A stretch of 64,000 bases of DNA, taken from contig CBFFRP010000092.1 of NCBI GenBank assembly GCA_965644295.1, positions 47,572-111,571 on the forward strand. The letters are read 5' to 3'. Positions 2,444 to 52,762 of the stretch are shown here, one piece after another. Origin of the DNA: Paraphysomonas bandaiensis (lineage: Eukaryota > Protista > Chrysophyceae). Made by a program: the position numbers and the translations under genes. The first letter of the stretch is position 1. Each line of letters opens with the position of its first letter. The notes beneath the pieces were generated by a model. It made no database searches. It was not told the DNA's origin and saw only the letters and a program-made list of their open reading frames with translations.

Positions 2444-3610
2444 TGTAGCTTATCCTCATGACGTTGAAAAGTTGATATTACATTGTATAGCTATTTGTAG
2501 CATGCTTGCTGTATTAAGATAGATGTTCCTTGATTAACATTAATAACACAAATGAGAACTCATATATAGTTTCTAATCAATGATATGTATACTGTAAGTG
2601 TGATGATAAATGTAAACAGTTGAAGGTGAGAGAGAGGCTTCTTATTGCCTTAATTAGCATCATCATCACATTTATATACAGCAGGCTTTACCTCTGCAAG
2701 TGCACCTGATCGAAAGATGTGTGTATGATATGAGACACACAATATCCTGAGAAGCACGATACGGCTCCAACCCTGAAACAACTGGGTGCCACTGCTCCTA
2801 ACCACCTATATAGCATCAGATATGGTACTTAAACTCTCCTGTAATATTCTTGAAGTTGTTTCGAAGTCCTGGATATGAAGACAGATCACTTGCACTGACC
2901 TCATTATGAACAGCAGTAGAAGAATGGAATATAACTTGGAGTTAGATGATCTGCTCTTGATATTAGGCTTATGATTGTGGTTTCTCTATAATTGCGTACT
3001 ATAATGAAATCACGTACATATGACTGTTATTATCATAATGAAGATAGAAGTGAGCTTCTGTTCAACTGAATATTGAAGTTGAATGTCTATATTTGCCCGG
3101 TGCTGATATGAGCGCCCTGTTGAGTCAAAATCAGGTCAAAAAAAGCTTTTTTTGAGACAAAATGGGGATAATGGTTAATAATAGCTGCCTATTGAAGTCA
3201 AGCATCAGGGCTATTTCACCTCATGGACAGAGAGCGAAAGTAATTGCACCTTAGTGCTTGAGGTGATTGTGCATCTTTCGTTGCGCAAAATAGTACAAAT
3301 GTTTGTATTAAGCTAAACTAATAAAATATGATAAAAGTCATGTTTTTTTAACTTTACCGAATGAAAACACATGCCCTGCAATGTAAGGCTGAACTATACG
3401 TAGGAACAGTTTAAAACTGTGACACGCATAGAGTGTATAGTAAACATATATTCTAGTGACATGTTCACTACATACGTGAAAATTACAGGACAGAAGAGTC
3501 AATACACACATATAGACAGACCACATATAGACAGACATTTCTATCTTGAGAAGCATTAAAACTCCAGCAAAGACGAGTCCAGGAATACATCATCGCTTGT
3601 TAAGCAATAC

Positions 3611-7704: not shown

Positions 7705-8513
7705 CGCGGCTTCCGTGGTTGGTTCCATAATAATTATATAATACCGCTTGAGGTATCCTTGCAATTCTACTATTTGTCTTGCCATCCTTAAAGCATTCCT
7801 CGGCGCAACGTCGTATTCTTGGCACCCTAATTATATATTAGTCAAACACTAATTTGGAGTCCAGTTGTTTACGATCCACTCCAAGGGTGTACCCTATAGC
7901 AGCGTCTGTTTTGTTTGGCATTGTTACTGTGATGCTGTAGTACAACGTAGCTATTAGCAAGCAAAATTAGTGATTAGTTTCGTACTAAAATCTACCTAGT
8001 TTGAATCATTTATAAGTTTTACGAGACGAAATCCCGTAATTCGTCATATAGTTATGTTTAACATTATATATAATATACATCTATTTAATAGCTGTAATCT
8101 TTCACCAGTTTACATATAGATTACAATAGTCTACATGTGCTATTCATGTCGATCAATAAGCCTTGAATATGTGTATTGTTGAGTCCTGCTATATGAGAGC
8201 AATTGAAAGCTGTAGTTATAAGCAGGGTGTTTAAATTACAGTAGTATACAGTTGTACTCTTATTAATCGTACTGTGAAAATGAATGACGATAACTATATA
8301 GTAGTAAAAAGGAATATAGTGACGATGCAAGTTGTAGTGACAACGTAAGATCGTACGAGATATGAGTGGTGGTAGAGACAACATGAAATTGGTGAATGAT
8401 AAAGATAATATATATATTGATTATAATTTTATATTTCTCAGTTGTTACCTTCATTTGTTCAGTTAGTACTTCTTATATAATGTCAACCTGTGATATGCAT
8501 ATGTGTATACACG

Positions 8514-9212
8514 CCCAACCACCCCCCAGGTTGAGCGCTACTGGACCGGCCACATTACTGCCACACAAATGGCCGACGCATTCGGACGCCACCTATCCAG
8601 CTCACTGCTCGAACATCAATTCCACGCCCTAGAAAAATTCATCGCCTCTATCCTACTCCCCCTATATGATGGAGGGCTCCGCATGCTTAGCAATAGGGGA
8701 CACGGATACCACAACGTAGACACGGCACCGGCGACACCGGTCCCGACACACGCAAAGCAACGCCAGCCCCAGGATACCCACCCGACACCAAAAGTACTCC
8801 AGCTACTCCAGGCGACATCCACCCCACGAACTACACTCTCTGCAAGAGCCCAGACCCGACAGAGGCAAGCGCAACCACTCCGGAAACAACTCCTCCTTAC
8901 GTGTGGCCGAAACCCCACCTCAACAACCAGCACCATCTCCACCACCGACTTGCACTCTCATATACATCTCGCCTCACCCACCCCCCACATAATCCATGGT
9001 ACAGGCCCGCCAGACACATTGCCCAAAGGTAGAGCCCCCGACTAACCTCACTACAAGGGACGGTAGCACCATGGTGCTCGCAGCGATGCGCAAGCAGTCC
9101 CGAGACGGTTGCCCGCCACTAGTAGTATATAGCAAATCTAGTTATTAGCTAGTCTATAGACATAAACTAGTTTCTGTACGCAACCGTACGCATGTAATAA
9201 TCAGACTTTCAT
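8514..9212 (+). mobile_element. 5'-truncated non-LTR retrotransposon (ORF C-terminus + 3' UTR)
   Basis: GC/C-rich island flanked by the 15-bp direct repeat ATATGTGTATACACG (8499-8513 and 9213-9227). Open frame ends GTGPPDTLPKGRAPD*; 3' end AATAATCAGACTTTC. Confidence 0.8.
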
Positions 9213-9399
9213 ATATGTGTATACACGTATATGATGTTAATACATATAATAGATTACTATCCCCCCTTTTCTACAGAGAATATAAGTAGTCATGTATGTA
9301 TAGAGTATAGAGACATTATTTCATTTCAAGTGATATACACTGCAGATCTGCGGAGTGGTGTTACTCTGTGTCACTGCGTACAAGTGGTAACTGGATTCT

Positions 9400-13226: not shown

Positions 13227-13326
13227 TATTAGTTTATAGTGTTGTTTAATCTGCTTATGTAGGTATGTGATGGTGATATGATGCAACTAAGCAACAAGGA
13301 TATACACGCACTATATCTATGCATAC

Positions 13327-13550
13327 ATGTGTATGTATGTATGTATGTATGTATGTATGTATGTATGTATGTATGTATGTATGCATACATGTGTATGTAT
13401 GTATGTATGTATGTATGTATGTATGTATGTATGTATGTATGTATGTATGTATGTATGTATGTATGTATGTATGTATGTATGTATGTATGTATGTATGTAT
13501 GTATGTATGTATGTATGTATGTATGTATGTATGTATGTATGTATGTATGT
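13327..13550. repeat. (TATG)n microsatellite
   Basis: About 55 TATG units with one interruption. Confidence 0.98.
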
Positions 13551-13832
13551 ACTCTGATAGGAATATGTACATGTATGTATGTGTTACGACCCGTGAGAAA
13601 AATGTGCCAGTCGATGAACTGGCAGTGCCAGTTCATCGACTGGCAGTTTTTGACTATCACTCAAAAACCCACCAAGAAAGTGAACCCGTCAGTGAAGTGG
13701 GTTATCCAGCCGTGTTTTTTTTCATTCCACCCACATACCATCGTAAGATATCGTAGTTGATGATTATCGCTCAATGCAACAGCATGATAGTAATATAAGT
13801 GTAACATATATCATTGTATCAAACAAGAAGGA

Positions 13833-17722: not shown

Positions 17723-18018
17723 CTCAGCTGCCATTAGGCCCACCTGATGGGCATCCGGGACAGGCCCCACCTCAAGGGTAACCGGGGTATTGGTCTGCCT
17801 GCTGAAGTCAACCATCCGGGATGTTCACCTTAAGAACTCAGAGCGGAAGTGGTTGCACCTTGGTGCGACACACAAGCAGCTTCTGTAGCGTTAAATAGTA
17901 GGATTACAGCGTCTGTTCTGATTAGTTAGAGGTAGAGGTCTAACTAGGTTGACTAGCATTCATCTAGCAACTAAGTTGGTGCAGATTCTTAACGCCTATT
18001 GCCAAATAAAGACATTCA
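17723..18018 (+). mobile_element. non-LTR retrotransposon 3' fragment
   Basis: Frame ends GPPDGHPGQAPPQG* at 17781; 17844-18018 aligns with 28492-28674; ends AAATAAAGACATTC. 5' boundary approximate. Confidence 0.7.
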
Positions 18019-18529
18019 ATATATACTAAGTCATGCATGGCCACCAGAAGCTCTGCGTACTCTTTGGTAGATAATAAAGGGAAGGTACACGTGGTTCTAC
18101 TAGAATCTGCGCGGATCGCATATATAAAAGTCATGCATAGTTATGAGAAATCCCGCGTAGTAATATCACCAAATATGAACACGGGTGGGGCGGTAACAGA
18201 ATCTGCGCGTGATCTATGCGGTCAGCTACGTTGGTACACGGGTGGTAGAATCAGTGCTATAACTTGGTGTTATAGGTAGTGTACAACCAGCCTACACTAT
18301 GGCCACGCCCTCGGTATGGAGAAGTTTACAATACTAAAACAAAAACGTAGAGTACTTACTTCACTGTATGTTGTATTATTAGTTGTGATTCTTAATATTA
18401 CTTGTGTCAGATATATATATTGGCTACATTGTTTTAGAGTGAATATTACAGTCAGCAAGCGCGATTATATGTCTGTACTTGCGAATAAATTGTACCTGTG
18501 AAATGACGGAGAGCTGTACTGTACCAAAA

Positions 18530-28002: not shown

Positions 28003-28730
28003 ATGTCAGATGAATGCAGCATCGGTACCATGCGCAAGTTATCGTTGAGTAGTTTCTCGGATATGGAGAAATGTAATTTTGTGAAAGAATATAAAGAGGG
28101 TCATTTCAAATCCCATCAATCAATTCGTTGCGTACAAGAAGAACATATTCAGCACTAAATAATTGGATTAAAGCCTGGAATGATGGGACACTGAAGGTTA
28201 AAAATTGCACACGCCGCAAGAAGCAAAGGAAGGGTTCATTTCCTGAAGTGGAGAGAAAACTTGTTGAGTACATTCATTTTCGCCAGGAGCACTACAAAGT
28301 AGATAAATGCCGGTTGAGCTGACTCTTTCTGCAGCAGAAGGCTAAGGACTATGCAAAGGTTAGTAATACTAAGAAGCAAGTATAATGCTCATGCTTAACA
28401 TTTTTGTACTGTATATATAGTCTATGCGGATGATGTAGACACGCTGAGTTCTTTTCGAGCTTCATCTGGTTGGCTACGTCTTGTGTTAGAACGGAAGTGG
28501 TTGCACCTTGGTGCTTGCGGCGACGCACAAGCAGCTTTCGTAGCGTTAAATAGTAGGATAAAAGAGTTTGTATTGATTAGTTACGGGTAGTGGTCTAACT
28601 AGTATGACTAGCATTCTTCTAGCCACTAATTGATGCAAGGTCTCAACGCCTATTGCTAAATAATCAGACATTCACTACGTCTTGTGTTGAAAAGTCGGAA
28701 CAATTATGTTCATGTGCATCTTCATGTTGT
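28003..28730 (+). pseudogene. pogo/Tigger-like transposase N-terminal relic, interrupted by a retro-insert
   Basis: RKGSFPEVERKLVEYI..LQQKAK..FRASSGWLR is a CENP-B/Tc5 HTH signature; contains a stop, a frameshift and an apparent intron. Confidence 0.75.
28488..28674 (+). mobile_element. 187-bp SINE-like or extremely 5'-truncated non-LTR insertion
   Basis: 14-bp TSD CTACGTCTTGTGTT (28474-28487 and 28675-28688); homologous to 17844-18018; ends AAATAATCAGACATTCA. Confidence 0.85.
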
Positions 28731-34234: not shown

Positions 34235-34554
34235 TATTGACAAATGACCATTTTCAGATGATTAAGATCGTTGTAAGAGAAGTTTAAGTTAGTCAAACTA
34301 GATAGATTACTTTATTATGATTGTATACACAATTGTATGTGTTGTCATATAACACATGTCAACAACATGATAAATTATTTCGTTCATGTCAACCACTGCT
34401 CAACTTTCGTATCTTGAATCGTCATGATATAATACTTCAGTTTCACAGTTATAGCTATATAGCACCTTTGACTATTGACTACGTATTACTGTTTTTCACA
34501 TTGTATTTAACGTATTCTACAGTACTATCTTAGAGAACCATACGTATTCCAACA
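34235..34554 (-). repeat. 3' LTR
   Basis: Direct repeat of 39440-39759; preceded on the minus strand by the purine tract GAGGAGGAG (34555-34563). Confidence 0.96.
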
Positions 34555-34721
34555 CTCCTCCTCAATGTAGAAACGAGTAATCGTCATTATACTGCAGCTA
34601 TATATATCATCTAGTCATCTTAGGATAAAAACGGATGTGAAAATCTTCATAAAGATACTGTGGACATCACACTTCGCTGTAACACAGTTATGTGGGATTC
34701 TTACCCACTAAAAACACACCC

Positions 34722-37700
34722 TTAACCTTTCTTGAACCGCTTCTTCTGATTCTTCTCAACTTCATTTGAAATGCTCCTCTTTTCCCCTGTGATAGTTTCT
34801 TCATGGAGTTTAAAGAGCTTTGTAGATAACGCTTTTGTAAATATGTCGGCCGCCATATCCTTAGTCGATACATGAATCAATCTGGCTGTAGGAAACCTTC
34901 CACTTACGTGTTCCCGAACCCAGTGGTACTTTATCTGAATATGTTTTGATCTTTTGTGATAGACTGGATTTTCTGACAGATCTTTTGCACTCTTGCTGTC
35001 CATGAAGAATGGGGTTGGCTTCGTCAATGCGAGTCCTAGCTCTCGTAACACCCCCCGTAGCCACACCAGTTCTTGCATGGCCGCATATTCAGCCATATAC
35101 TCGGACTCCATACTGGAAGTTGCAACTGTAGTCTGCAGTTTGGACTGCCAAGCGATTGCTCCAGCACATAAGAATACAATATAACCGGTAGTTGAACGTC
35201 TCGTTAGTATATCACCTGCCCAGTCCGCATCACTAAATACATGTAAATCAAACTTACTCCCACTGAATTTGATTCCTTTGCTGGTGGTGCCTCTCAAATA
35301 TTTCAGTAAATGAATAGCTAAACGACACGATGCGTATGTAGGATTACTGCTGTATCTCGATAGTAGTCCGATTGCATAGGCGAGATCTGGTCTTGTGTGG
35401 AGTGCGAGATACAGGATTGCTCCAATAATACTACGATACGGAAATTTTGAGACCCAGTCCTCCTGTTCTGATGTAAGTTCCAGTTCTGCAGCTAGTAGTT
35501 CTTGTGCATTTGATGGCAACAACGGAGCTTCCTTATTCTTTCTACTGTTCCCCATGACATGGTTGAATTTCTGAATCACTTTCTCCGCATACTTTGATTG
35601 ATCTAGTTTGAACCAGTCTTCGCCTCTCGTGATTCGAATATTTAGGAAACTTTGGCACTCTCCCATGTCCCTCATTTCAAACTTTTGGCAGAACTTGTTC
35701 TTGACAAAAACAAGGAATTCAAAATCCACAGATGCGATTATGATGTCATCTACATACAGGAGTAATAACGTAAGTCTGCCTTGGTGCCAACGATAATATA
35801 AGCAGGTATCTAACACGCATGATCTAAACTGCATTGACTTTTTATGAATTTATCGATGTGGCGATTCCACTGACGCGGTGAGGCTCGTAAACCATATAGT
35901 GCTTTGATGAGTTTAAAACACCATCCATTGCTGAGCTCCTCATCTGGAGGTGGGTACATGTAGACATCTTCATCTAAATTTGCATAACAAAATGCAGAAC
36001 TGACATCAAGCTGGTGTACATGCATATTGAACATAAAGGCAATTGCAATCACGAGCCTGATAGTTATCCCTTTGACAACCGGTGCAAACGTAGATGGCTC
36101 CTCCTCAGTTTTCTCCTGAAGATTTCCTAGTGCGACGAGTCGAGCTTTATACTTCTGTATGTTGCCTAGTATGTCACGCTTGAGTTTGTGAACATACTTA
36201 CATCTGATTAATTTGACCCCAGATGGTCGACGTACTATCTTCAAAACGCCTCGTCGTAAAAGAGCTTTCTTCTCTATTCGTCTGGCTGTTCTCCATTTGT
36301 CCGCTTGAGGGGACCTCTCCGCCTCTAGAAAACTGTTCGGTTCATGGACGTGTTCATTCTCAGTACTCTCCTCTGAATCCATGACATTTACATCGGCATC
36401 CATTACCTCTATCATGTTAATTTCTCCTAACACTGAGGCATTAGCTAGCCTCCTCCGTAAACGCTTACGTTTATCTGCATCCCTTTTAGATACTCTCTGT
36501 AGGGTATTAGTACTGTTAGAATTTATAGTATCAGTATATTCAGGTACTCCCTGTTTTACTGCTCGATCAGGTTCTCCCTGAGCTGCATCTTCATCAAGTA
36601 CTCCTTGAGTCATATCTTCATCAGGTGCTCCCTGAATAATACCATGGTTAACTAGCTGCTCCTGATGGCTCTCAGGTGCTGGGATAGTGGACGTACTCCG
36701 TCCATCAGTGGTACTAGAAGCGTCCCTCGTTCCCGTATATCCCGTGTATCCAGGCGTATTCCTTGTCATTACCTGAACATCTTCTATATGTATGGGTACC
36801 TTCTGCTCAATGTGGGTTCTCCCCGCAGTTACAAGTGACCGATAACCAACAATGACACCCTTTCTTTCTACCACTCTGGTGGTCTTGTACAACAGCCCGT
36901 CTTCATCGTCTATGTGAAAAGTCTTCACGAGATGCTGATAATCATTCACCGTCTTTGGTCTAGGTGCTGTTCGTACTCGGAGAGCGTCGATTTCTGCGTA
37001 ATATTCTTCGGTGCGGGAAGGTATACTCTCATCTGTGAGTATGTGTACACACGTAATTACCTTATCGGTTGCTGGGAGATACACCTGGTATCCAACTTTA
37101 TCTTCCGAATATCCCACTAGGTATCCAATCTTTGATTTATCGTCCCAGTCCTTTCGCCTGTCCGCCTTAGGTGTCAATATATAAGTTTTGCACCCCCATA
37201 CTCTAAAAAATATTTCAAAAACTGGGTGGCTGACCCGTGACATACTCATATGGGGACATGTATCCTCTGTCCGTCCTTGTAGGGAGTCTGATCAGTGTAT
37301 AGCGAGCAGCATGATACGCGTCTAACCAGAATGGAACCGGTAGACCTGACTGCAACAACATCGCCAACGCCATCTCTGATGCAGTCCTGAATTTTCGCTC
37401 CTCTACTGCATTCATTTCCGGACTATCTGTTGAAGACCAAGTATGTTTGTAGCAGCCTTGTGATCTCAAATAGCTCCTAAGTTCTTGATTTATGAGTTCT
37501 CCAGCTCCATCAGCGTGGTAGTGGTCCACTCTCAGCTTATATTGCCTAATCTCTCCTTCGAACACCTCTCTAAAAAACCGAATCACTTCTTCTTTAGTAC
37601 GCTGGTTTACGCCTTTTACCCAGAACATCCTACTCGGGTGATGAGTTAGTTTGATCACGTAGCGCTCATCACCTCGAGCGGGAGTATTCAGAAATACTTG

Positions 37701-39456
37701 CACATCAGCCGATATGTCTGGCTTGACATCCGTATCCTCCTTTGTGTGAAACGAAACTCTCGTAATCTTTGATCTGGCACATATGCTACAGAGACAAGAT
37801 TTTTTTAATGCAGTCTTCGATAGGTGCTTCCTCTGCAGATTTGAGCCAGTGAACAACATCCTTCTATGTGCCTCCGTTAGAGCCCCTTTGTTGAAATGGC
37901 CCATTCTCCTATGCAGCAGATCCAACTCATCTTCTCCATACTGATCAGTCAAATTTGCTTCTGGTGCACCCCTACTACAGCTGGATACATCTGGCAGACT
38001 CAGTAAGGTTTTCGTAGGGACCGCAGTCATACCATTTAGCATGGGTCCCTCCAATACTGTCACTCCAGTGTTGTGATTCACGATTCGAATTCCATTCCAA
38101 ACGATGAACTCATAACCCATATCGTTCAAGCGTTTCCCCGAACACAGAAATCTGTTGATGTCTTCGGAGTATTCGACACCCTTCCAGTCGTTTACCCTTC
38201 CTGTTGCCGTTACATTGATCACTGTTCCTTTCTTGGAGCCTCTGATAACTCTATCTGATGGAGTTGATTCATCGAATACTTGCTGATCATTTATCAAAAA
38301 CATAGACGATGAACAGCATGTATCTATGTATGTATAGTGTTCAGCAGTACCAATCATACAACATGTGTCACTTTTATCATATATATCAACAGCGCAGTCA
38401 TAAAGCATATTCGCCTCGGACTCCGAGTCAGACTCGGTTCCTCCTCTGCGGATATTCTCGAATGTGAAAAACCTTCCCAGATTTCTGGGGTTTCTTGGTC
38501 TTTCCAGTCGAATTTCGGGGACATTCGTTCGCGCGATGGTTTTTGGATTTGCATACTCTGCATCCTGTATATTCCTTACTGCCCGGTCTTTGTCCCTTCG
38601 TTTCCCCCTTTTTCTTCCTACATTGTTCTGTATTATGATTGTGTATTATACCTTTCTTCGAGCAATAAGTGCACTTCCTCTTTGTAGATACTCTCTCTTT
38701 CTTTCGAGGCTTTTCAATATGATTCAGCTCCTCCGTGCTCTTGCGCTTCTTCTCTATGATTTTCCTCCCATACTTGGTGTCGTCGAACTGTTCGATACGT
38801 TTGGATAACAATTCATATGGTACATCATCGGGCATTAAATACAGGGCATAATTCAAACCGTCATATTCATCACTGATAATTCCCTCCTTCAGCCTACTAA
38901 TTTTTGATTCTTCCGTTACCGTTTGGTTATGCGCCTGAAGTTCACGAAGAAGCAGCTCATAACGCAGTACATACTCTTTCGCGGTCTCCCCTGGCTTCAT
39001 CTCGAATGATCCAAACTGAGCAAGCAGAGCACTAATCTTGTTTTGTGTTCCTCCTTCAAAACACGATTTAAGAGTGCTAACCATCTCTCTGGCGCTGAAC
39101 TTATTAACTCTTCCTTCAGCTGCCTTGAACTCCTTGTGCTTCAGATGAAACTTCTGCAGCGCCTTCGGAGATCGCTTCACCGCCTCTCTGCAGTATGAGT
39201 AGGCAATTGCATTCGCCTTCCAATACTTGTCCACCGCTTCTTTGTAGGACTTAGTCTCAAGACTATTCAGGGGTTGAATTCCGAAATCCTCTTCCTCTGG
39301 TGGTCTTTCTAGAGCCACCTCACTCTGCTCCTTTCTCATAAGGAACGTCTCAAAGTCTTCGATCCATTGTTCAACGTTGCTCTCGTCGAACCATGGAACA
39401 TCAGCTCTATCCTCCTTCTCTCCTCCGCATTCGCTACCATATTGACAAATGACCAT
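34722..39456 (-). CDS. Copia gag-pol polyprotein, three apparent frameshifts at homopolymers
   Basis: Gag CCHC knuckle CRVCKSKNHRANEC; protease YIDTCCS; integrase HHCC, HADGAGE, NAVEER and RVWGC; RT YKARLVA, LDVSSAF and YVDD; RNase H FSDADWAG and KHIQIKYHWVRE. Confidence 0.9.
39428..39439 (-). promoter_or_regulatory. primer-binding site TGGTAGCGAATG, probably for initiator tRNA-Met
   Basis: Abuts the 5' LTR; complementary to a tRNA 3' end ...CGCUACCA, similar to the yeast Ty1 PBS TGGTAGCG. Confidence 0.75.
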
Positions 39457-39759
39457 TTTCAGATGATTAAGATCGTTGTAAGAGAAGTTTAAGTTAGTCA
39501 AACTAGATAGATTACTTTATTATGATTGTATACACAATTGTATATGTTGTCATATAACACATGTCAACAACATGATAAATTATTTCGTTCATGTCAACCA
39601 CTGCTCAACTTTCGTATCTTGAATCGTCATGATATAATACTTCAGTTTCACAGTTATAGCTATATAGCACCTTTGACTATTGACTACGTATTACTGTTTT
39701 TCACATTGTATTTAACGTATTCTACAGTACTATCTTAGAGAACCATACGTATTCCAACA
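39440..39759 (-). repeat. 5' LTR
   Basis: Reads TGTTGG...TCAATA on the minus strand; direct repeat of 34235-34554. Confidence 0.96.
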
Positions 39760-43788: not shown

Positions 43789-46700
43789 TTATGCCGTCCA
43801 TCGCATTATCTGTCCAATTTTAGATGCACTGGCAACACAGTATTTATTAGATGCGATATCAGTGCAACTTTGAGCAGAGCAATTCAAATCCTTAGGTACC
43901 CATGTCTTGACTCCTTCCCTTGCCTCAGAAACTGCTTCAGAATCAGTACTCATGGTGTAATCCCATATACTCAGATTTCCGGAAGCAGAGCCTGTCACTA
44001 TAGACTGGTGAAACCATGCAACCTTTACAATGCTGTGCGCGGTAAATTCCGAGGTACACTTGAGCCTCCTACTGTCCCACACTTTCACAACGCCGTCAGC
44101 ACCGGAAGATATCATCCCTGGAACCCCACCCACTGCAGGTTCTATTGAGTTTTCATATGACTGTACCTCACTCAGACAATTCACTGAATTTCTGTGCGCA
44201 CCATGAGATGCAAGACAGTCTCCCTCCGCACTCCACATGTTTATGATTCCGTCTCGAGCGGCAGACATGAACGCCGGGCTTCCCCGGGTGGCGCTGTGTC
44301 CGCCCCCTGAGTGAGCAGGAATTGCTTTTATTATATTCACAGACCCAAAATGCTTATCGAGCGAAACACGCAATCGTCCGGACCTGATGTCCCACAGCTT
44401 CACAGTTCGGTCCTTACTCGCGCTAACCACTACTTTGCCCCCATCCACCCACTTCATTGAGAGAATGCTATCGGAGTGGCCTCGGAAGATGCAGACTTGG
44501 GATCGTTTCGCCCTCAGATCCCAGACGCGAACTGTCTTGTCAACAGATCCTGTCGCAGTGATATGAGGAGAACCCATTGCAGATGCAACCGTCTCTGCAC
44601 CCTCAATGCACGTCACTAACTCGTCATGGCCCTTCATAAGACGCACCGGCTTACCCTCAGAACCACTCCATACTCGCACACAGCCGTCCGAACACCCAGC
44701 CCAGATCGACTCACATACTTCATCTGTCCACATTCCCGTCACACGCAGGGGCTTCTGAGTGGACGGTACGCTCGACACCTTGGGCCCAACCTTCTTTCCA
44801 CTGCTAACGCGTTGTGTGCTGGCACCCTTTGGCGCAAAAGAAGCAGTATCCAAGACAGCCCTAGAAGAATTTCCTGACTCTGAGCTCCACACACGTACTG
44901 TGCCATCAAGGGAAGCACTAAGTAGCAAACTCTTGCTCGTTACAAGGCGGAGCTTGGAAACACTTGCAGTGTGCTCGTCGAGCAAAACTCCTGAGGGGTT
45001 GAGGGAAGGGGTCACTAGTCCATCCCCGGAGTCATAGTCATCATCCGATCCGCGGATGCCATATTCATCCGCCAGAAGAGATGCATCTTCATTGCTACCT
45101 ACCACTCCAACATCCTTGTTCCGGGTAGAGGGGTTGGCTGTGTTCATACCGCTCATACGAAGATCGATTGAGTCACCGGAAACCTCCAAATTGTGCCTCC
45201 TAAACGCAGACCCAGAATGTAAGGTTCCCACACCACTAGTCCCACCTCGACTCATAAGCTGCTTAGCACTGCTATTCTTTGACATTCGTGCGCCTTGTTT
45301 AGACTGGCTTAGCCTTGCATCCGGTTTGGGGGCATTTAGGGAAGTAGAACCGTGAAGTGAATGACCTACAAGAGCATAGCCCTGTAGCTGACCTTCTGAA
45401 GGAGACATCCCAAGAGCACGAGAAGAAGTCAACTGCTCTCGCTTGGCCTTACGACTCTTGCTCGCTGCCCACCGGGAATCAGTCATTTTTTCCAGTGACG
45501 AATCGTCATCGGAATCCTTGCGATGGCGATTACGCCGAACACTGTGAGCGTATCCAGTCTCATCATATCCATTTCGTACCCAATCATAGCCCTCATCTTT
45601 GGCTTCAAAGCTATCATCCGGAGCAAAATCAATAACATCATCTTCACTCATGGGACCACTCTCCGCCTCCTCGCAGTCTTCTGATAACTCAGCTGCAGAT
45701 ATATCATCGTCATCTTGTACGCACAAATCTTCGTACACTTCAGTCTCGTCGTGAATGTCATCCGACCTCATAGAGTGTGAAAAAAGAGGCTCACGACGAG
45801 CCTCTACTTCATCTTCTACCATCGACGAACTCTTGTCCGACTTCCAAGACTGCGCCATCGGGTCTTGAGGCATTGATGGTGGGGCCTTGACGGGGGTTGG
45901 CCTCTGCTTCGCAGTTGTGTCTCGGTCATTCCCAGGTCTATTCGAAAATTCATAAGGCTTCTTACGTAGCGTGCAGGTAGGAGAAAAAGTAGACTCTTTT
46001 CCTGCATCAGCCCGCAATTCCTTTCGGGGCGTTTCTCGCGGAGATCCAGCGTATTTAGAGCTCATAGCTACCTTCCGTATATGAGTTTTGGGGGAGCTAG
46101 TAGCAGGTAAAGTAGTGGCCCGTCTAGAAGGGGATGGTGGCTGGGATGTATCACTTCGAATTGACGGGGAATCGCGACCACGGGTAGACTTTGCGCCCTC
46201 AGACCTGCCGCCAAGTCTCCCTTTAACACCTCGGGAAACTTTTCCGCGGTTACTGACACTGGTAGTATTCTTCTTAGCAGTTTCCTTCTCAGTCATGCGG
46301 CTGATGCTTTTCCCCTCAGCTTTGTTCATATTCTCACCGTCATCCTTCCCCTCAGAGATGGATATCTGTTTAACCTCATCTGTAGGGGTGGACACTACAG
46401 AGTCAATTGTGAACAACTTTTCATCTTTGGCCGAAAGTAGGAGCATGGAATCAGGGACATTTGTTGCAGTGGTATTTTCCGGCGGCTCCTGATCTCGCTT
46501 CGCTGGTGTTGGACTCGCAACGTAGCTGTCCTCGGAACAGGCAGGGGATGCTATAGTAACTGGTGTGTGAGATGGCGCTGTAAGTCCAGCATCCACAGCC
46601 ATAAAGTGTTCAGTTGCAGCTTTAACCTTGCGTCTAGGGAGAGGATCGAGATTATCCTGTCGGTGTCGAGAGTTTCTAAACGGTCGTGCGTCAACATGTT

Positions 46701-48665
46701 CCGGACTTGGAAGTGGCTCCAATGTAATTCTTCCAGATTCAAGCGTGTTCGTACTATCTTCAAGATCTGAATTCTCCAAGGACAGGTTGTCAAGTGAGTT
46801 ACCTAGCGAGATATTATCACAAACAAGGCTTTTTTCGTCCTTTGTATCTTGGTGGTCATGCTGTCTGGACCGTATCGCACCCATAGCGCTAGCTAGCATT
46901 GTACGTGGCTGTGTTGCCTCCATGTCGAGGTCTAAAGACCCGCTCGCAGCGTCTCCATTTAGCGGTAGACAGGTAGTAACCTCAGGAGGATTTCCTTCCC
47001 GTTCCTGATGTAACAACTGATGCTGATTGGTCCCCGAGGAAATAGGAGGCGGAGAGTGCAGATGGGAATCCACGTCATCCTGTCTACTTGCACCTATGGT
47101 GTTCATGAGGCTTCGTGATGCAGTTGTAGATAACTTCCACTGAGGTGTGCCTTCCCATTCAGCAGCTGTTGTTGACACAGTCGATGGGCGGTTTCCCCAC
47201 GCACCGCTACCAGGCCCGGCAGACCATGAAGCTAGATGGCTTGCGTGCGCCACAAACGGGTGCAGGAGCAAAGAAGTGATATCCGGACGGTTCATGGCAT
47301 CCCGCTGCAGACAAGCATTCAAGAAAGTCAGTAGCTCAACTGAGGGACTCTCGGGATACTCCGGGAGTGTGTCAGCACAAGCAATGTGGTACAATACAGT
47401 GACAGGATTGCTGAACTGTGCCCACGGCGTCTTCCCAGTGGTCATTTCAATAGTAGTACATCCAAGTGACCATACATCCGCCTTTTTCCAGTTGAGGTGC
47501 TTCTCATCATTTCGTACTACCTCAGGCGCCATAAAAGATGGTGTCCCACGGACATCGTTAGAACCTGTGCTTCGGTTGCTAACTTCGTCTTTCTGCCCTT
47601 GCGGAACATGGACAGCGGGTGTTTCTACAGGTGGCCTCCAGTGCTTACTCGCTCCAAAATCTGCTAGCTTTATTGCACCATCGTTTCCAACTAAGCAGTT
47701 CGCTCCCTTGACGTCTCTATGGGCAATTCCATTTCTGTGTAAGTACTCAAGCCCAAGCAAGAGCTGTCGGGTGTACGACCGCGCTACGGACTCCTCCAGC
47801 TTGCCGAATTTGTCAATGAGACTCTTCAGTGATCCGCCTGGAACATACTCTAGGAAAACTGAAAGGGTTGTCGGCGTCAGCTCTGTACCAATATATCGTA
47901 CGATATTCGGGTGCTTCAGAGATCTCAGAGTGTTGATCTCGTTATCCAATTGGGCAAGTTCTTTTTTCGATATGTCGTCCATGGTCATTTGTTTCACTGC
48001 CATCAGTTCACCGGTCTCTACGTTGAGACCCAGGCACACAACTCCGAAAGCCCCCTTCCCAAGTATTTCCCCCTTTTTCCACTTCCAGGGCTTCTCGACT
48101 ACACGCGGGGAAGAAGTTTCAATCTGCGGGAATCTGTGCATCGTCTTACTATGCGCTGAGCGCAGCGGGGCGACGACGGTTGGAGATGGTGCTAGTCCTG
48201 GACTTGGACTCGCACTAGAATGGGGCATCTTAGCCCAATCCGACGATGCCAATGAGCCCCCCGCAGACCATAGAGATGACGTTCTCGCAGTTCGTTTGCC
48301 ATGAACATCAGGAAGCATATTCTCTGAAACCGTGACATTGACAGTATCCATATCTTCCAGAAATAGGTCGTCCAGGTCATTCTGAGACGCCAGTGTAATT
48401 AAGTCGCCATCAACATCTTCATATTTCAATGTCACATCGAAACCATAATCCATTGATAGTCGCTTCCATAATCTGTTTCACAATGAATAAGTAAATATAT
48501 TCGTACGGTAACAATACTTACTGAGGAAAACTATAATCCTGAGATATGATAACAACTCGTATTTCATTCTCATATCTACATTTCAGACGAATCCGCTGTA
48601 AGAAACAAGTCATATATATATCATAATACATGATCTTATATGAGTACCTTCTTCTGATTGTCCAT
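43789..48665 (-). CDS. MAP kinase kinase kinase (STE11/MEKK-like) with N-terminal PB1 and C-terminal WD40 repeats
   Basis: Two short upstream exons supply MDNQKK/RIRLKCRYENEIR. PB1 motif LKYEDVDGDLITL; kinase motifs GKGAFG, MAVKQ, HRDVKGAN, DFG and GTPSFMAPE; several GH...WD repeats. Confidence 0.92.
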
Positions 48666-49070: not shown

Positions 49071-52000
49071 CCACTCGCTCCGTTTTCCGGTGCCGCTGTT
49101 TTTTGAGGTGCCATTCTTTGGTGTGTTTTTTATCATCAGAATTGCAATCGGATCTTCATATAGATATACATGTATGTATATTCCTTTAAAATCATCATAT
49201 TTGTACACTCCTGTCATAATAAATACACCAATACATAAGAATGGATAGTTCCTGTGGTTAGTCACATCAACACTGATATCTGGTTGAAATATCAGATGAT
49301 GGGGAGTGAGAGGGATGTATTCCTGGTCCTCTGAACCTGGTGATGTACTCAGCGTTGTTGCCGCTTCCTGTAAGCTCATTGTTTGTATTTTTAGGGGAGA
49401 TAATCATTCAGCTGCTATGTAGACAATAGGGAGTCTTCCATGCGCAGACCTCACTTCATTATTAGTCTCATTTGTAGTGTATTTGCGGATATATATCGGA
49501 TCTATGCGATATATGGCTTCATTGTGTTTGTGTCATCTGCATTGAAGTGTAGGTATTTGAGTGGAAGAGTATATAAGTGTGTTATATTGTCTCTTGTTGC
49601 ATTCTGCTGCTTGTTTACATGATTATAGATGCTAGTGCTACACATAACCTCGTTATTATTACGTATTCTCGTTACAATATTTTAAGACTGTGTTTTCACG
49701 AATATTGAAGTCGTCATCTTATGGCATATCAGCATAGATTACCTATTCACCAGCTATACATGTATGTACTCAGTGTGTTCATGTTCATGCAACAGTTCAA
49801 GATCTAGATATGTGGTATATGTTCTGTGTCTTCGCTCTGTGTGCTTCATACAACATATATAGACCATGTATGTGGCATATGTTCTCTGTATGTGCTTCAT
49901 ACAACACATTGAGACCATATATGTGGTATATGATCTGTATGTTCGCTGTGCTGTGCTGTAAGTACACAGCACACAGAGACTGTGTATGTGAAATGTGCTC
50001 TGTATATTCACTCTGCGTGCTTCATACAACACGCAAGAACTATATATGTGGTATATGATCTGTATGTTCGCTGTGCTGTGCTGTAAGTACACAGCACACA
50101 GAGACTATCTGTATATTCACTCTGCGTGCTTCATACAACACGCAAGAACTATATATGTGGAATATGATGTGAATATATTACTCTGTGCTCTTCATGCAAC
50201 ATACAGGGACTATGTATGTGTTATATGGTGCGTAGTATCACACTTTGCCCCTCATACAACACGCAAAGACTATATATGTGGTATATGGTATATGCGTTCA
50301 CTCTGTGCGCACCATGCGACACGCAGGGACTATATAAGTATTGTATGATGTATGTATTATGTATTCACTATGTGCTCTTCATGCAATACACAAGGGCTAT
50401 TTGAGTGCTATATGATGTGTATTTTTGCACTCTGTGCTACATATAACACAGAGAGACTATTGAAGTGTTTTTTTAGTGATCTGTATGTTTACTATGTGCT
50501 CTTCGTACAGTACACAAGCACTCAATGTATGGTATATGACGTGTAGTTTCGCTCTCTATGCTTCGTATAGTAGCCGGGGATTATATCAGTGTTATATGAT
50601 GTATGTGTTTACTCTCTATGCTTCGTATATCGTGTATAGTATATAGCACATAGGGACTATGTAGGTAGTAGGCGCAGCACTTTGCAGTTGTATATAGCAC
50701 TGGGTTTATATGTTTACTCTGTAAACTCCGTCGAGTAGAATTTTAATAACAGTGGAAAATGACATTAAATTGTCATATTTTATTGTGTAGTATTAGTACT
50801 TAGAGTGCTACTGCCAACTGTACACGATGGGATAGGAAGCCAGATTAGTACAATAGTAAAGTACTTATGTAAATAGTAAACCCTTAAAGCAAAAAATACG
50901 TTATCTATTAAAAACTAAAAACAAGCGTGCACTGTGGATTACAGTGTTCAAATTAAAAAATCAGCAACATCAAACTTAACCATACGCTATGCTAGCTACA
51001 ACCATATGCTACGCTACTTCCATCGCCCCATTGTCATCAAGTGTTCTTAGGGCCTCGATTGCTTTATCAAGTCTGTACTGACGCTTCTCGGCGATGGACA
51101 TTCCTCGTAACAATACTTTTTCTTCGTCTCTCTTTTCTTTGGCCTCAGCCTTGGCTGTCAGCCTATCCAAGCTATATCCCTATGTACTATATACTATACA
51201 CGATATACGAAGCATAGAGAGTAAACACATACATCATATAACACTGATATAATCCCCGGCTACTATACGAAGCATAGAGAGCGAAACTACACGTCATATA
51301 CCATACATTGAGTGCTTGTGTACTGTACGAAGAGCACATAGTAAACATACAGATCACTAAAAAAACACTTCAATAGTCTCTCTGTGTTATATGTAGCACA
51401 GAGTGCAAAAATACACATCATATAGCACTCAAATAGCCCTTGTGTATTGCATGAAGAGCACATAGTGAATACATAATACATACATCATACAATACTTATA
51501 TAGTCCCTGCGTGTCGCATGGTGCGCACAGAGTGAACGCATATACCATATACCACATATATAGTCTTTGCGTGTTGTATGAGGGGCAAAGTGTGATACTA
51601 CGCACCATATAACACATACATAGTCCCTGTATGTTGCATGAAGAGCACAGAGTAATATATTCACATCATATTCCACATATATAGTTCTTGCGTGTTGTAT
51701 GAAGCACGCAGAGTGAATATACAGATAGTCTCTGTGTGCTGTGTACTTACAGCACAGCACAGCGAACATACAGATCATATACCACATATATAGTTCTTGC
51801 GTGTTGTATGAAGCACGCAGAGTGAATATACAGAGCACATTTCACATACACAGTCTCTGTGTGCTGTGTACTTACAGCACAGCACAGCGAACATACAGAT
51901 CATATACCACATATATGGTCTCAATGTGTTGTATGAAGCACATACAGAGAACATATGCCACATACATGGTCTATATATGTTGTATGAAGCACACAGAGCG

Positions 52001-52762
52001 AAGACACAGAACATATACCACATATCTAGATCTTGAACTGTTGCATGAACATGAACACACTGAGTACATACATGTATAGCTGGTGAATAGGTAATCTATG
52101 CTGATATGCCATAAGATGACGACTTCAATATTCGTGAAAACACAGTCTTAAAATATTGTAACGAGAATACGTAATAATAACGAGGTTATGTGTAGCACTA
52201 GCATCTATAATCATGTAAACAAGCAGCAGAATGCAACAAGAGACAATATAACACACTTATATACTCTTCCACTCAAATACCTACACTTCAATGCAGATGA
52301 CACAAACACAATGAAGCCATATATCGCATAGATCCGATATATATCCGCAAATACACTACAAATGAGACTAATAATGAAGTGAGGTCTGCGCATGGAAGAC
52401 TCCCTATTGTCTACATAGCAGCTGAATGATTATCTCCCCTAAAAATACAAACAATGAGCTTACAGGAAGCGGCAACAACGCTGAGTACATCACCAGGTTC
52501 AGAGGACCAGGAATACATCCCTCTCACTCCCCATCATCTGATATTTCAACCAGATATCAGTGTTGATGTGACTAACCACAGGAACTATCCATTCTTATGT
52601 ATTGGTGTATTTATTATGACAGGAGTGTACAAATATGATGATTTTAAAGGAATATACATACATGTATATCTATATGAAGATCCGATTGCAATTCTGATGA
52701 TAAAAAACACACCAAAGAATGGCACCTCAAAAAACAGCGGCACCGGAAAACGGAGCGAGTGG
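49071..52762. mobile_element. foldback-type element with 1586-bp terminal inverted repeats
   Basis: 49071-50656 is the reverse complement of 51177-52762 (mirror ORFs; one mismatch seen near the inner end). 520-bp spacer; CC...GG ends; flanking TACA at 49067-49070 and 52763-52766. Confidence 0.9.
49805..50656. repeat. ~60-bp minisatellite within the foldback arm (mirrored at 51177-52028)
   Basis: About 14 degenerate units of the form ATATGTGGTATATG...TTCRCTCTGYGTGCTTCATACAACAC...GACT. Confidence 0.85.

Follow-up and report, generated by a model that had tools for sequence, protein, structure and literature searches.

We find that the 3' untranslated region (UTR) of young LINEs in the marine protist Paraphysomonas bandaiensis, elements that encode an endonuclease and a reverse transcriptase (RT), opens with a conserved Y-shaped RNA fold. 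The fold is a real three-way junction and forms the first module of the UTR. The position of this motif, its copy number, the preservation of its fold through compensatory changes and its sharing with non-coding elements are established. The motif had been noticed in a preliminary description of the window, that is, of the whole stretch of 64,000 nt analysed here, and this description is in part confirmed. As for its function, we think that the fold is probably a handle that lets the ORF2 protein, the LINE reverse transcriptase, recognise its template RNA. In what follows, P1 denotes the closing helix of the junction, and P2 and P3 denote its first and second hairpin.

Results

Copies of the fold in the window

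By sequence reading and folding we identified one three-way junction of type A and one of type T in the window (Table 1). The sequences of these two sites were found as given in the preliminary description, and both do fold as a three-way junction. A third copy at 17844 had been said to lack 7 nt of the second hairpin. Exactly these 7 nt are missing, and there is also one substitution. A 12-mer core occurs seven times in the window, compared with 0.35 expected occurrences. The sequence from 8650 to 9211 shows 97.7% identity to L103, which is the 3' end of a LINE from the subfamily with 46% protein identity described below. We also looked for an HDV-like ribozyme in the head of the 5'-truncated SINE-like copy (17739-17843), using Rfam at E 10, and obtained no match there.

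Table 1. Features of the window that are related to the fold
Feature	Position	Strand	Remarks
Fourth copy of the fold, degenerate	3234..3281	+	inside an old SINE-like copy
C-terminal remnant of a type-A LINE ORF2	8503..9045	+	from the ORF list; ends ...GRAPD, stop TAA 9043-9045
11-nt spacer between stop codon and first pair of the fold	9046..9056	+	
Type-A three-way junction	9057..9101	+	rare form with C-G outer pair in hairpin P3
Remainder of the type-A 3' tail	9102..9214	+	end = ...AATAATCAGACTTTCATAT, no poly-A; same tail with target-site duplications in L005, L022
SINE-like retroposon, 5'-truncated	17739..18022	+	type-T tail; 85% identity to L004
Broken fold	17844..17885	+	P3 minus 7 nt, one substitution
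Target-site duplication, left copy	28474..28487	+	14 nt
Tail-only type-T retroposon	28488..28677	+	~190 nt, begins 3-4 nt 5' of the fold; similar tail-only copies: L023, L008, L030
Type-T three-way junction	28491..28541	+	P1 12 positions including one G.A mismatch; P2 GCAC/GUGC, loop CUUG; P3 UGCG/CGCA, loop GCGA
Target-site duplication, right copy	28675..28688	+	

Several other features lie in the same window. On the reverse strand, at 34235-39739, there is a Copia-type LTR retrotransposon that includes ORFs for gag, for an integrase-related protein and for RVT_2. The insertion is very recent, since its LTRs, both of 300 bp, show 100% identity. A long (TGTA)n-type microsatellite and two arrays of degenerate tandem repeats with units of ~60-125 bp are found at 13306-13604 and 49791-52042. 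An intron-free ORF of 1,554 aa, with an N-terminal protein kinase domain and C-terminal WD40 repeats, occupies 43789-48453 on the reverse strand; the surrounding stretch is richer in GC (~51% vs ~39%).

Copy number and sequence types in the genome

The 62.5-Mb genome contains at least 1,100 copies of the fold, which belong to three sequence types, T, A and K. Type T, the form at 28491-28541, is by far the most numerous with about 930 copies, while type K, which has the loops CAAG and GCAA, was found in 68. A 31-nt motif pattern occurs 1,040 times in the genome; the reversed control pattern does not occur at all.

The preliminary description had claimed two compensatory base-pair swaps in the GNRA-capped stem. 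One of them, the change from G-C to A-U at the pair that closes the loop, does separate families. The other one is a rare point variant: in 107 of the about 109 copies of type A, the outermost position of the GNRA hairpin is a C.A mismatch, which is the usual state of this family, and only two copies have C-G there, the form at 9057-9101.

Architecture of the fold

The closing helix P1 consists of 8-12 pairs, which in this genome include those between GGT(W) and (A)GC, with one G.A mismatch. The strands GGTW and CAAGCA had been described as conserved strands of the junction. They are indeed conserved within this genome, but they are replaced in relatives; and because the P1 positions corresponding to GGTW/AAGCA form Watson-Crick pairs in other lineages, where they lengthen the closing helix, these strands are mostly helix with a G.A mismatch rather than single-stranded.

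Hairpin P2 has four pairs. The C-G pair that closes its loop is invariant, and the loop itself can be CUUG, CAUG, CAAG, UUUG, ACCU, CCUG or CCUU. Hairpin P3 has three to four pairs of the form GCR/YGC, with U-A, U.G, C-G or C.A as the outer pair. The GNRA loop that had been seen on P3 is present in this genome, but it is not a general property of the fold: in other lineages the loop is GACC, CCCC, GCUC or AGCA. Across lineages, the only letters conserved outside the helices are the last U of the linker between P2 and P3 and the CA at the start of the linker that follows P3.

For most copies, the folding energy is no better than that of shuffled sequences, with Z-scores of about -1.7 to +0.2. 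Note that the support for the fold comes from covariation and from the recurring architecture, and not from thermodynamic stability.

Comparison between lineages and covariation

A protein search returned metagenomic relatives at 31-41% identity, the contigs of which extend into the 3' UTR. In the LINE relatives that were compared, with 28-45% identity between ORF2 proteins, we find the Y at the same place with a different sequence. For example, L036/L038, L037, L041, L039 and L042 have a Y-shaped fold right after the ORF, spelled in other letters each time. The Tara Oceans contig L040 carries the K form letter for letter and, for this reason, is not an independent case. When each sequence is folded alone, the minimum-energy fold is the Y in six of the eight lineages, compared with less than 1% of dinucleotide shuffles.

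We then compiled a structure-guided table of 13 rows and 16 pair columns. Standard pairs make up 93.7% of the table, double-sided changes occur in 15 of the 16 columns, and none of 2,000 partner shuffles reached the observed values; these counts lean towards structure, and the shuffle counts are not probabilities, because the table was aligned by hand along the predicted folds and its rows are related. The double-sided changes bear out the original suggestion of a covarying structured RNA.

The table was made by hand since none of the alignments produced by programs was in the correct register. One covariance model (R1), derived from a MAFFT alignment, had the wrong register for L037, L041 and L039, found only its own seeds among 63 loci and was rejected. 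A second model (R2), built only from the copies in this genome, detected only the L035/L038 relatives, and these weakly (E 0.007-0.4); even with the filters off, it missed L037, L039, L041 and L042. Since this model misses them, the homology of the distant folds has to be judged by their position and architecture. With a strict descriptor of the Y we obtained six matches in 657 kb of related loci, two of which are true sites; folds with a mismatch or a bulge in P1 escaped it.

Among 55 more distant metagenome loci (25-34% identity) there was no match to the covariance models. By eye, a Y at the same place was seen among the more distant relatives only in L043 and L139, and the folds of these two differ by two compensatory pairs. 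Genome contigs, searched for further relatives, yielded a single contaminant contig whose sequence stops short of the UTR, and viral contigs yielded none.

The elements that carry the fold

The motif had been assigned to the 3' UTRs of retroelements, and this assignment holds: upstream of the fold there is an ORF that encodes a non-LTR reverse transcriptase, and the fold follows its stop codon. The open frame in L032 is 1,144 aa long, contains an RVT_1 domain, ends 46 nt before the fold and matches human L1 ORF2p and R2 proteins. A profile of this ORF and its relatives gives E values of 1e-24 to 1e-26 against R2 and L1 ORF2p. The relatives carry an APE endonuclease, and so does the K family of this genome. 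Pfam gave no confirmation of an RNase H domain downstream of the RT, and an FTDGS-like motif was seen by eye only. These LINEs are very young: over 1 kb, dozens of copies share 98-100% identity. When the genome was searched at the DNA level with a LINE 3' end, only full-length, near-identical copies came back, which yields no distribution of truncation points.

In the LINE of the K family (L140 = G000:C644:1000-10999, with L099), a single open frame spans 3,731 aa. It includes, ahead of the APE endonuclease and the RT, a SET/PR domain (PF00856, E 1e-8) and a further SET match that is weak. SET-domain genes also adjoin the RT gene in two metagenomic relatives (L035:1-2727; L138:6204-7707). A search of the literature returned no report of a LINE that carries a domain resembling histone methyltransferases.

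According to an alignment of 30 genomic copies, the motif begins a tail of ~190 nt that ends in ...AATAATCAGACWTTCA... and has no poly-A; many copies are surrounded by target-site duplications. The fold itself is located 140-190 nt upstream of the 3' end of the tail. At least three unrelated bodies are joined to the tail on its upstream side, one of them coding and the others non-coding and SINE-like, and in addition there are tail-only copies. Every non-autonomous family retains the tail from the 5' edge of P1 through the 3' end, and no unit shorter than this has been amplified as a family. In one SINE-like family the middle hairpins of the tail are lost, while the Y and the terminal block are kept. 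In L001, telomere-type repeats (CCCTAA/CCCTAAA) begin within ~60 nt after a type-T LINE tail, at a contig end.

Conservation in the genome and in public sequence runs

LINE subfamilies with C-terminal protein sequences that are 73%, 62% and 45-46% identical to L032 all have a nearly unchanged fold of type T, A or K. In tails picked out with a 15-mer located close to the 3' end, the fraction of non-consensus letters is 0.057 in the fold, 0.11 in the next 52 nt and 0.17 in the rest, measured with a filter that slightly favours intact motifs. The fold is the least variable part of the tail, and almost all of its variation is in the outer pairs of P1.

The sequence of the motif is also present in marine metagenomes and metatranscriptomes. 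We examined four public runs, one of which is a poly-A marine metatranscriptome, as Logan contigs. Across the four runs, no variant exceeds 10% at positions 1485-1535 of L025 (the fold minus its last four letters), while both flanks are polymorphic. The only variants listed inside the fold affect the two outer P1 letters (L025 1536-1537) and swap G.U positions. In the contigs of these runs, different upstream sequences join at L025 1485-1488, which is the 5' edge of P1.

Distance between the stop codon and the fold

In seven lineages (K, A, L036, L037, L041, L043 and L139), exactly 11 nt separate the ORF2 stop codon from the first pair of P1. The sequences of these spacers are unrelated among the lineages, and indels are common elsewhere in the UTR. 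K, A, L036, L037 and L041 have the C-terminus PPD-stop in common, while L043 (DADGPF-stop) and L139 (DADRPF-stop) are a more distant pair with 28-29% identity. The spacer of L042 has 10 nt. In type T the former stop is now a sense codon (PPDQKRR-stop) and the spacer has 46 nt; since T is the most successful family, the 11-nt rule is not needed for activity.

The footprint of a ribosome is 28-30 nt with a P-site offset of 12-13, which means that ~10-12 nt past a stop codon in the A site lie inside the ribosome. Because 11 nt is about the length of mRNA covered past such a stop codon, we infer that the Y would lie flush against the terminating ribosome.

Discussion

Function of the fold

Three functions had been offered for the motif, namely an RT-recognition element, a stability element or an undescribed ribozyme. 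Recognition by the RT fits best, whereas nothing supports the ribozyme: Rfam has no matching ribozyme, and only U and CA are conserved among the unpaired letters. The strongest argument for a handle is that what every non-autonomous family keeps runs from the first pair of P1 to the 3' end. The ORF2 protein would bind the Y, and this binding would determine the choice of template for target-primed reverse transcription, with the conserved 3' terminal block (...AATAATCAGACWTTCA...) as the likely start of copying. With the Y placed 11 nt past the stop codon, a newly made ORF2 protein could seize the very RNA that encodes it.

This idea can be taken further. The Y may abut the leading edge of the ribosome that terminates at the ORF2 stop codon, so that the finished ORF2 protein would be handed directly to its encoding RNA; this would be a physical basis of LINE cis-preference that can be read from the sequence. 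The bound complex might also block 5'-to-3' decay and in this way give rise to tail-only RNAs that seed new SINEs. We put this forward tentatively, as a rather doubtful extension of the handle.

Potentially, the fold could have a role in RNA processing. The Y would then set the 5' end of a tail RNA, either by cutting itself as a ribozyme or by halting a 5'-to-3' exonuclease, alone or via a bound protein, as xrRNAs do, and the tail-only RNAs would be copied and seed SINE-like elements. The 5' ends of the copies are compatible with this: tail-only copies with target-site duplications start at most about 4 nt from the first pair of P1 (window 28488, L023, L008, L030, L022, L005), and all composite families join the tail at the same edge. 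In a small sample of 30 copies drawn by their 3' ends, ~3 start within the ~12 nt at the edge of P1 and ~6 in the 140 nt downstream, but there are also 5' ends inside the fold (L117, L132, L005) and elsewhere. Moreover, the edge would also form a boundary if it just delimits the minimal unit needed by the enzyme. No ribozyme or xrRNA model of Rfam matches the fold even at E 10, and with the U and the CA as the only conserved letters outside the helices and loops that vary freely, little is left for a catalytic core. All in all, we consider a processing element unlikely.

On the other hand, the target of the Y might be the ribosome that has reached the ORF2 stop codon rather than the reverse transcriptase, with an effect on termination, recycling or readthrough, or as a 3' translation enhancer. 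In viruses, readthrough is stimulated by extended helices whose start lies about 8-11 nt past the stop codon, and a helix that starts after 11 nt fits this range. The constant length of a spacer with free sequence, in a UTR where indels are common, and the conserved C-termini of the two groups of lineages point in the same direction. However, the in-frame stops that come 2-7 codons after the ORF2 stop leave no coding extension in frame and hence no readthrough product, the spacer of the abundant T family has 46 nt, and the fold stays intact, as the best-conserved part of the tail, in SINE-like and tail-only elements, which are non-coding. A link to translation therefore seems improbable to us as the main role of the Y, although it could operate alongside the handle, and so could processing. 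Finally, the likeness between copies might mean nothing more than the recent common descent of young repeats, with a fold that arose by chance. The near-identity of most genome copies (98-100%) and folding energies that do not surpass those of shuffles would agree with this. It is strongly disfavoured, and we regard it as very improbable, given that the same architecture recurs at the same place in lineages with diverged proteins and unrelated UTR sequence, that nearly all pair columns have double-sided changes and that shuffled sequences hardly ever adopt this fold. A handle for the reverse transcriptase is the reading that we prefer.

Relation to known systems

In stringent-type LINEs, the ORF2 protein recognises a stem-loop of the 3' tail of its own element, and partner SINEs carry the same tail (PMC4176376, PMC1636434). 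The elements described here resemble eel UnaL2/UnaSINE1 and zebrafish ZfL2 (PMC1636434, PMC4176376) in that a conserved RNA structure is located in the LINE 3' UTR and the whole tail is found on non-autonomous retroposons; furthermore, they have no poly-A requirement, a conserved 3' terminal block and abundant partners with target-site duplications. Several features of a stringent-type LINE/SINE tail element are present: an autonomous non-LTR element has the fold in its 3' UTR, the tail is shared with non-autonomous elements, and the structure is kept by compensatory changes. In UnaL2 and ZfL2, however, the recognised structure is a single stem-loop adjoining the 3' end, whereas the candidate recognition element here, known from sequence, is a three-way junction at the 5' edge of the UTR that does not adjoin the 3' end. 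It is also mostly phased to the stop codon, and it has no sequence or model similarity to those tails.

The R2 protein binds determinants in the R2 3' UTR, and this UTR alone suffices as template for target-primed reverse transcription (PMC11194090). Like the elements studied here, R2 has a multi-helix 3' UTR that starts right after the ORF, and the ORF2 profile matches the reverse transcriptases of both R2 and L1. R2 differs in its restriction-like endonuclease and its specific rDNA target, while the elements studied here combine an APE endonuclease with insertions at dispersed sites.

A compact three-way junction and an association with retroelements are also known from the hammerhead, twister-sister and hatchet ribozymes, but here there is no model match and no conserved core beyond U and CA, and loops and helices vary freely. 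Generally, neither a model match nor conserved core letters were found for any of the known ribozymes (hammerhead, twister, twister-sister, hatchet, pistol, HDV-like). A search of Rfam 15, the check that had been proposed for novelty, gave no match at gathering thresholds for the whole window, and none at E 10 for 8900-9300 and 28440-28700; no known ribozyme or Rfam family was therefore found for the motif. In the literature, we found no description of this LINE group or of its tail. While it is fair to speak of a candidate new structured RNA as far as the RNA family is concerned, the functional class, a 3' tail common to a LINE and its SINEs, is well known. What appears to be new is that the fold has a three-way architecture, opens the UTR at its 5' edge and is phased to the stop codon.

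Significance

How a LINE reverse transcriptase chooses its own RNA, and how SINEs exploit this choice, is known in molecular detail for only a few animal elements. Here, covariation supports a compact fold of ~50 nt, present in more than 1,100 copies, that belongs to a LINE/SINE system which is very young and active and has clear relatives in ocean and lake metagenomes. The fold is a candidate for a new Rfam family and a marker for the annotation of these repeats. The fixed distance of 11 nt makes a simple, testable prediction that links the termination of translation to the capture of the template; if this link is true, it would bear on the question of cis-preference.
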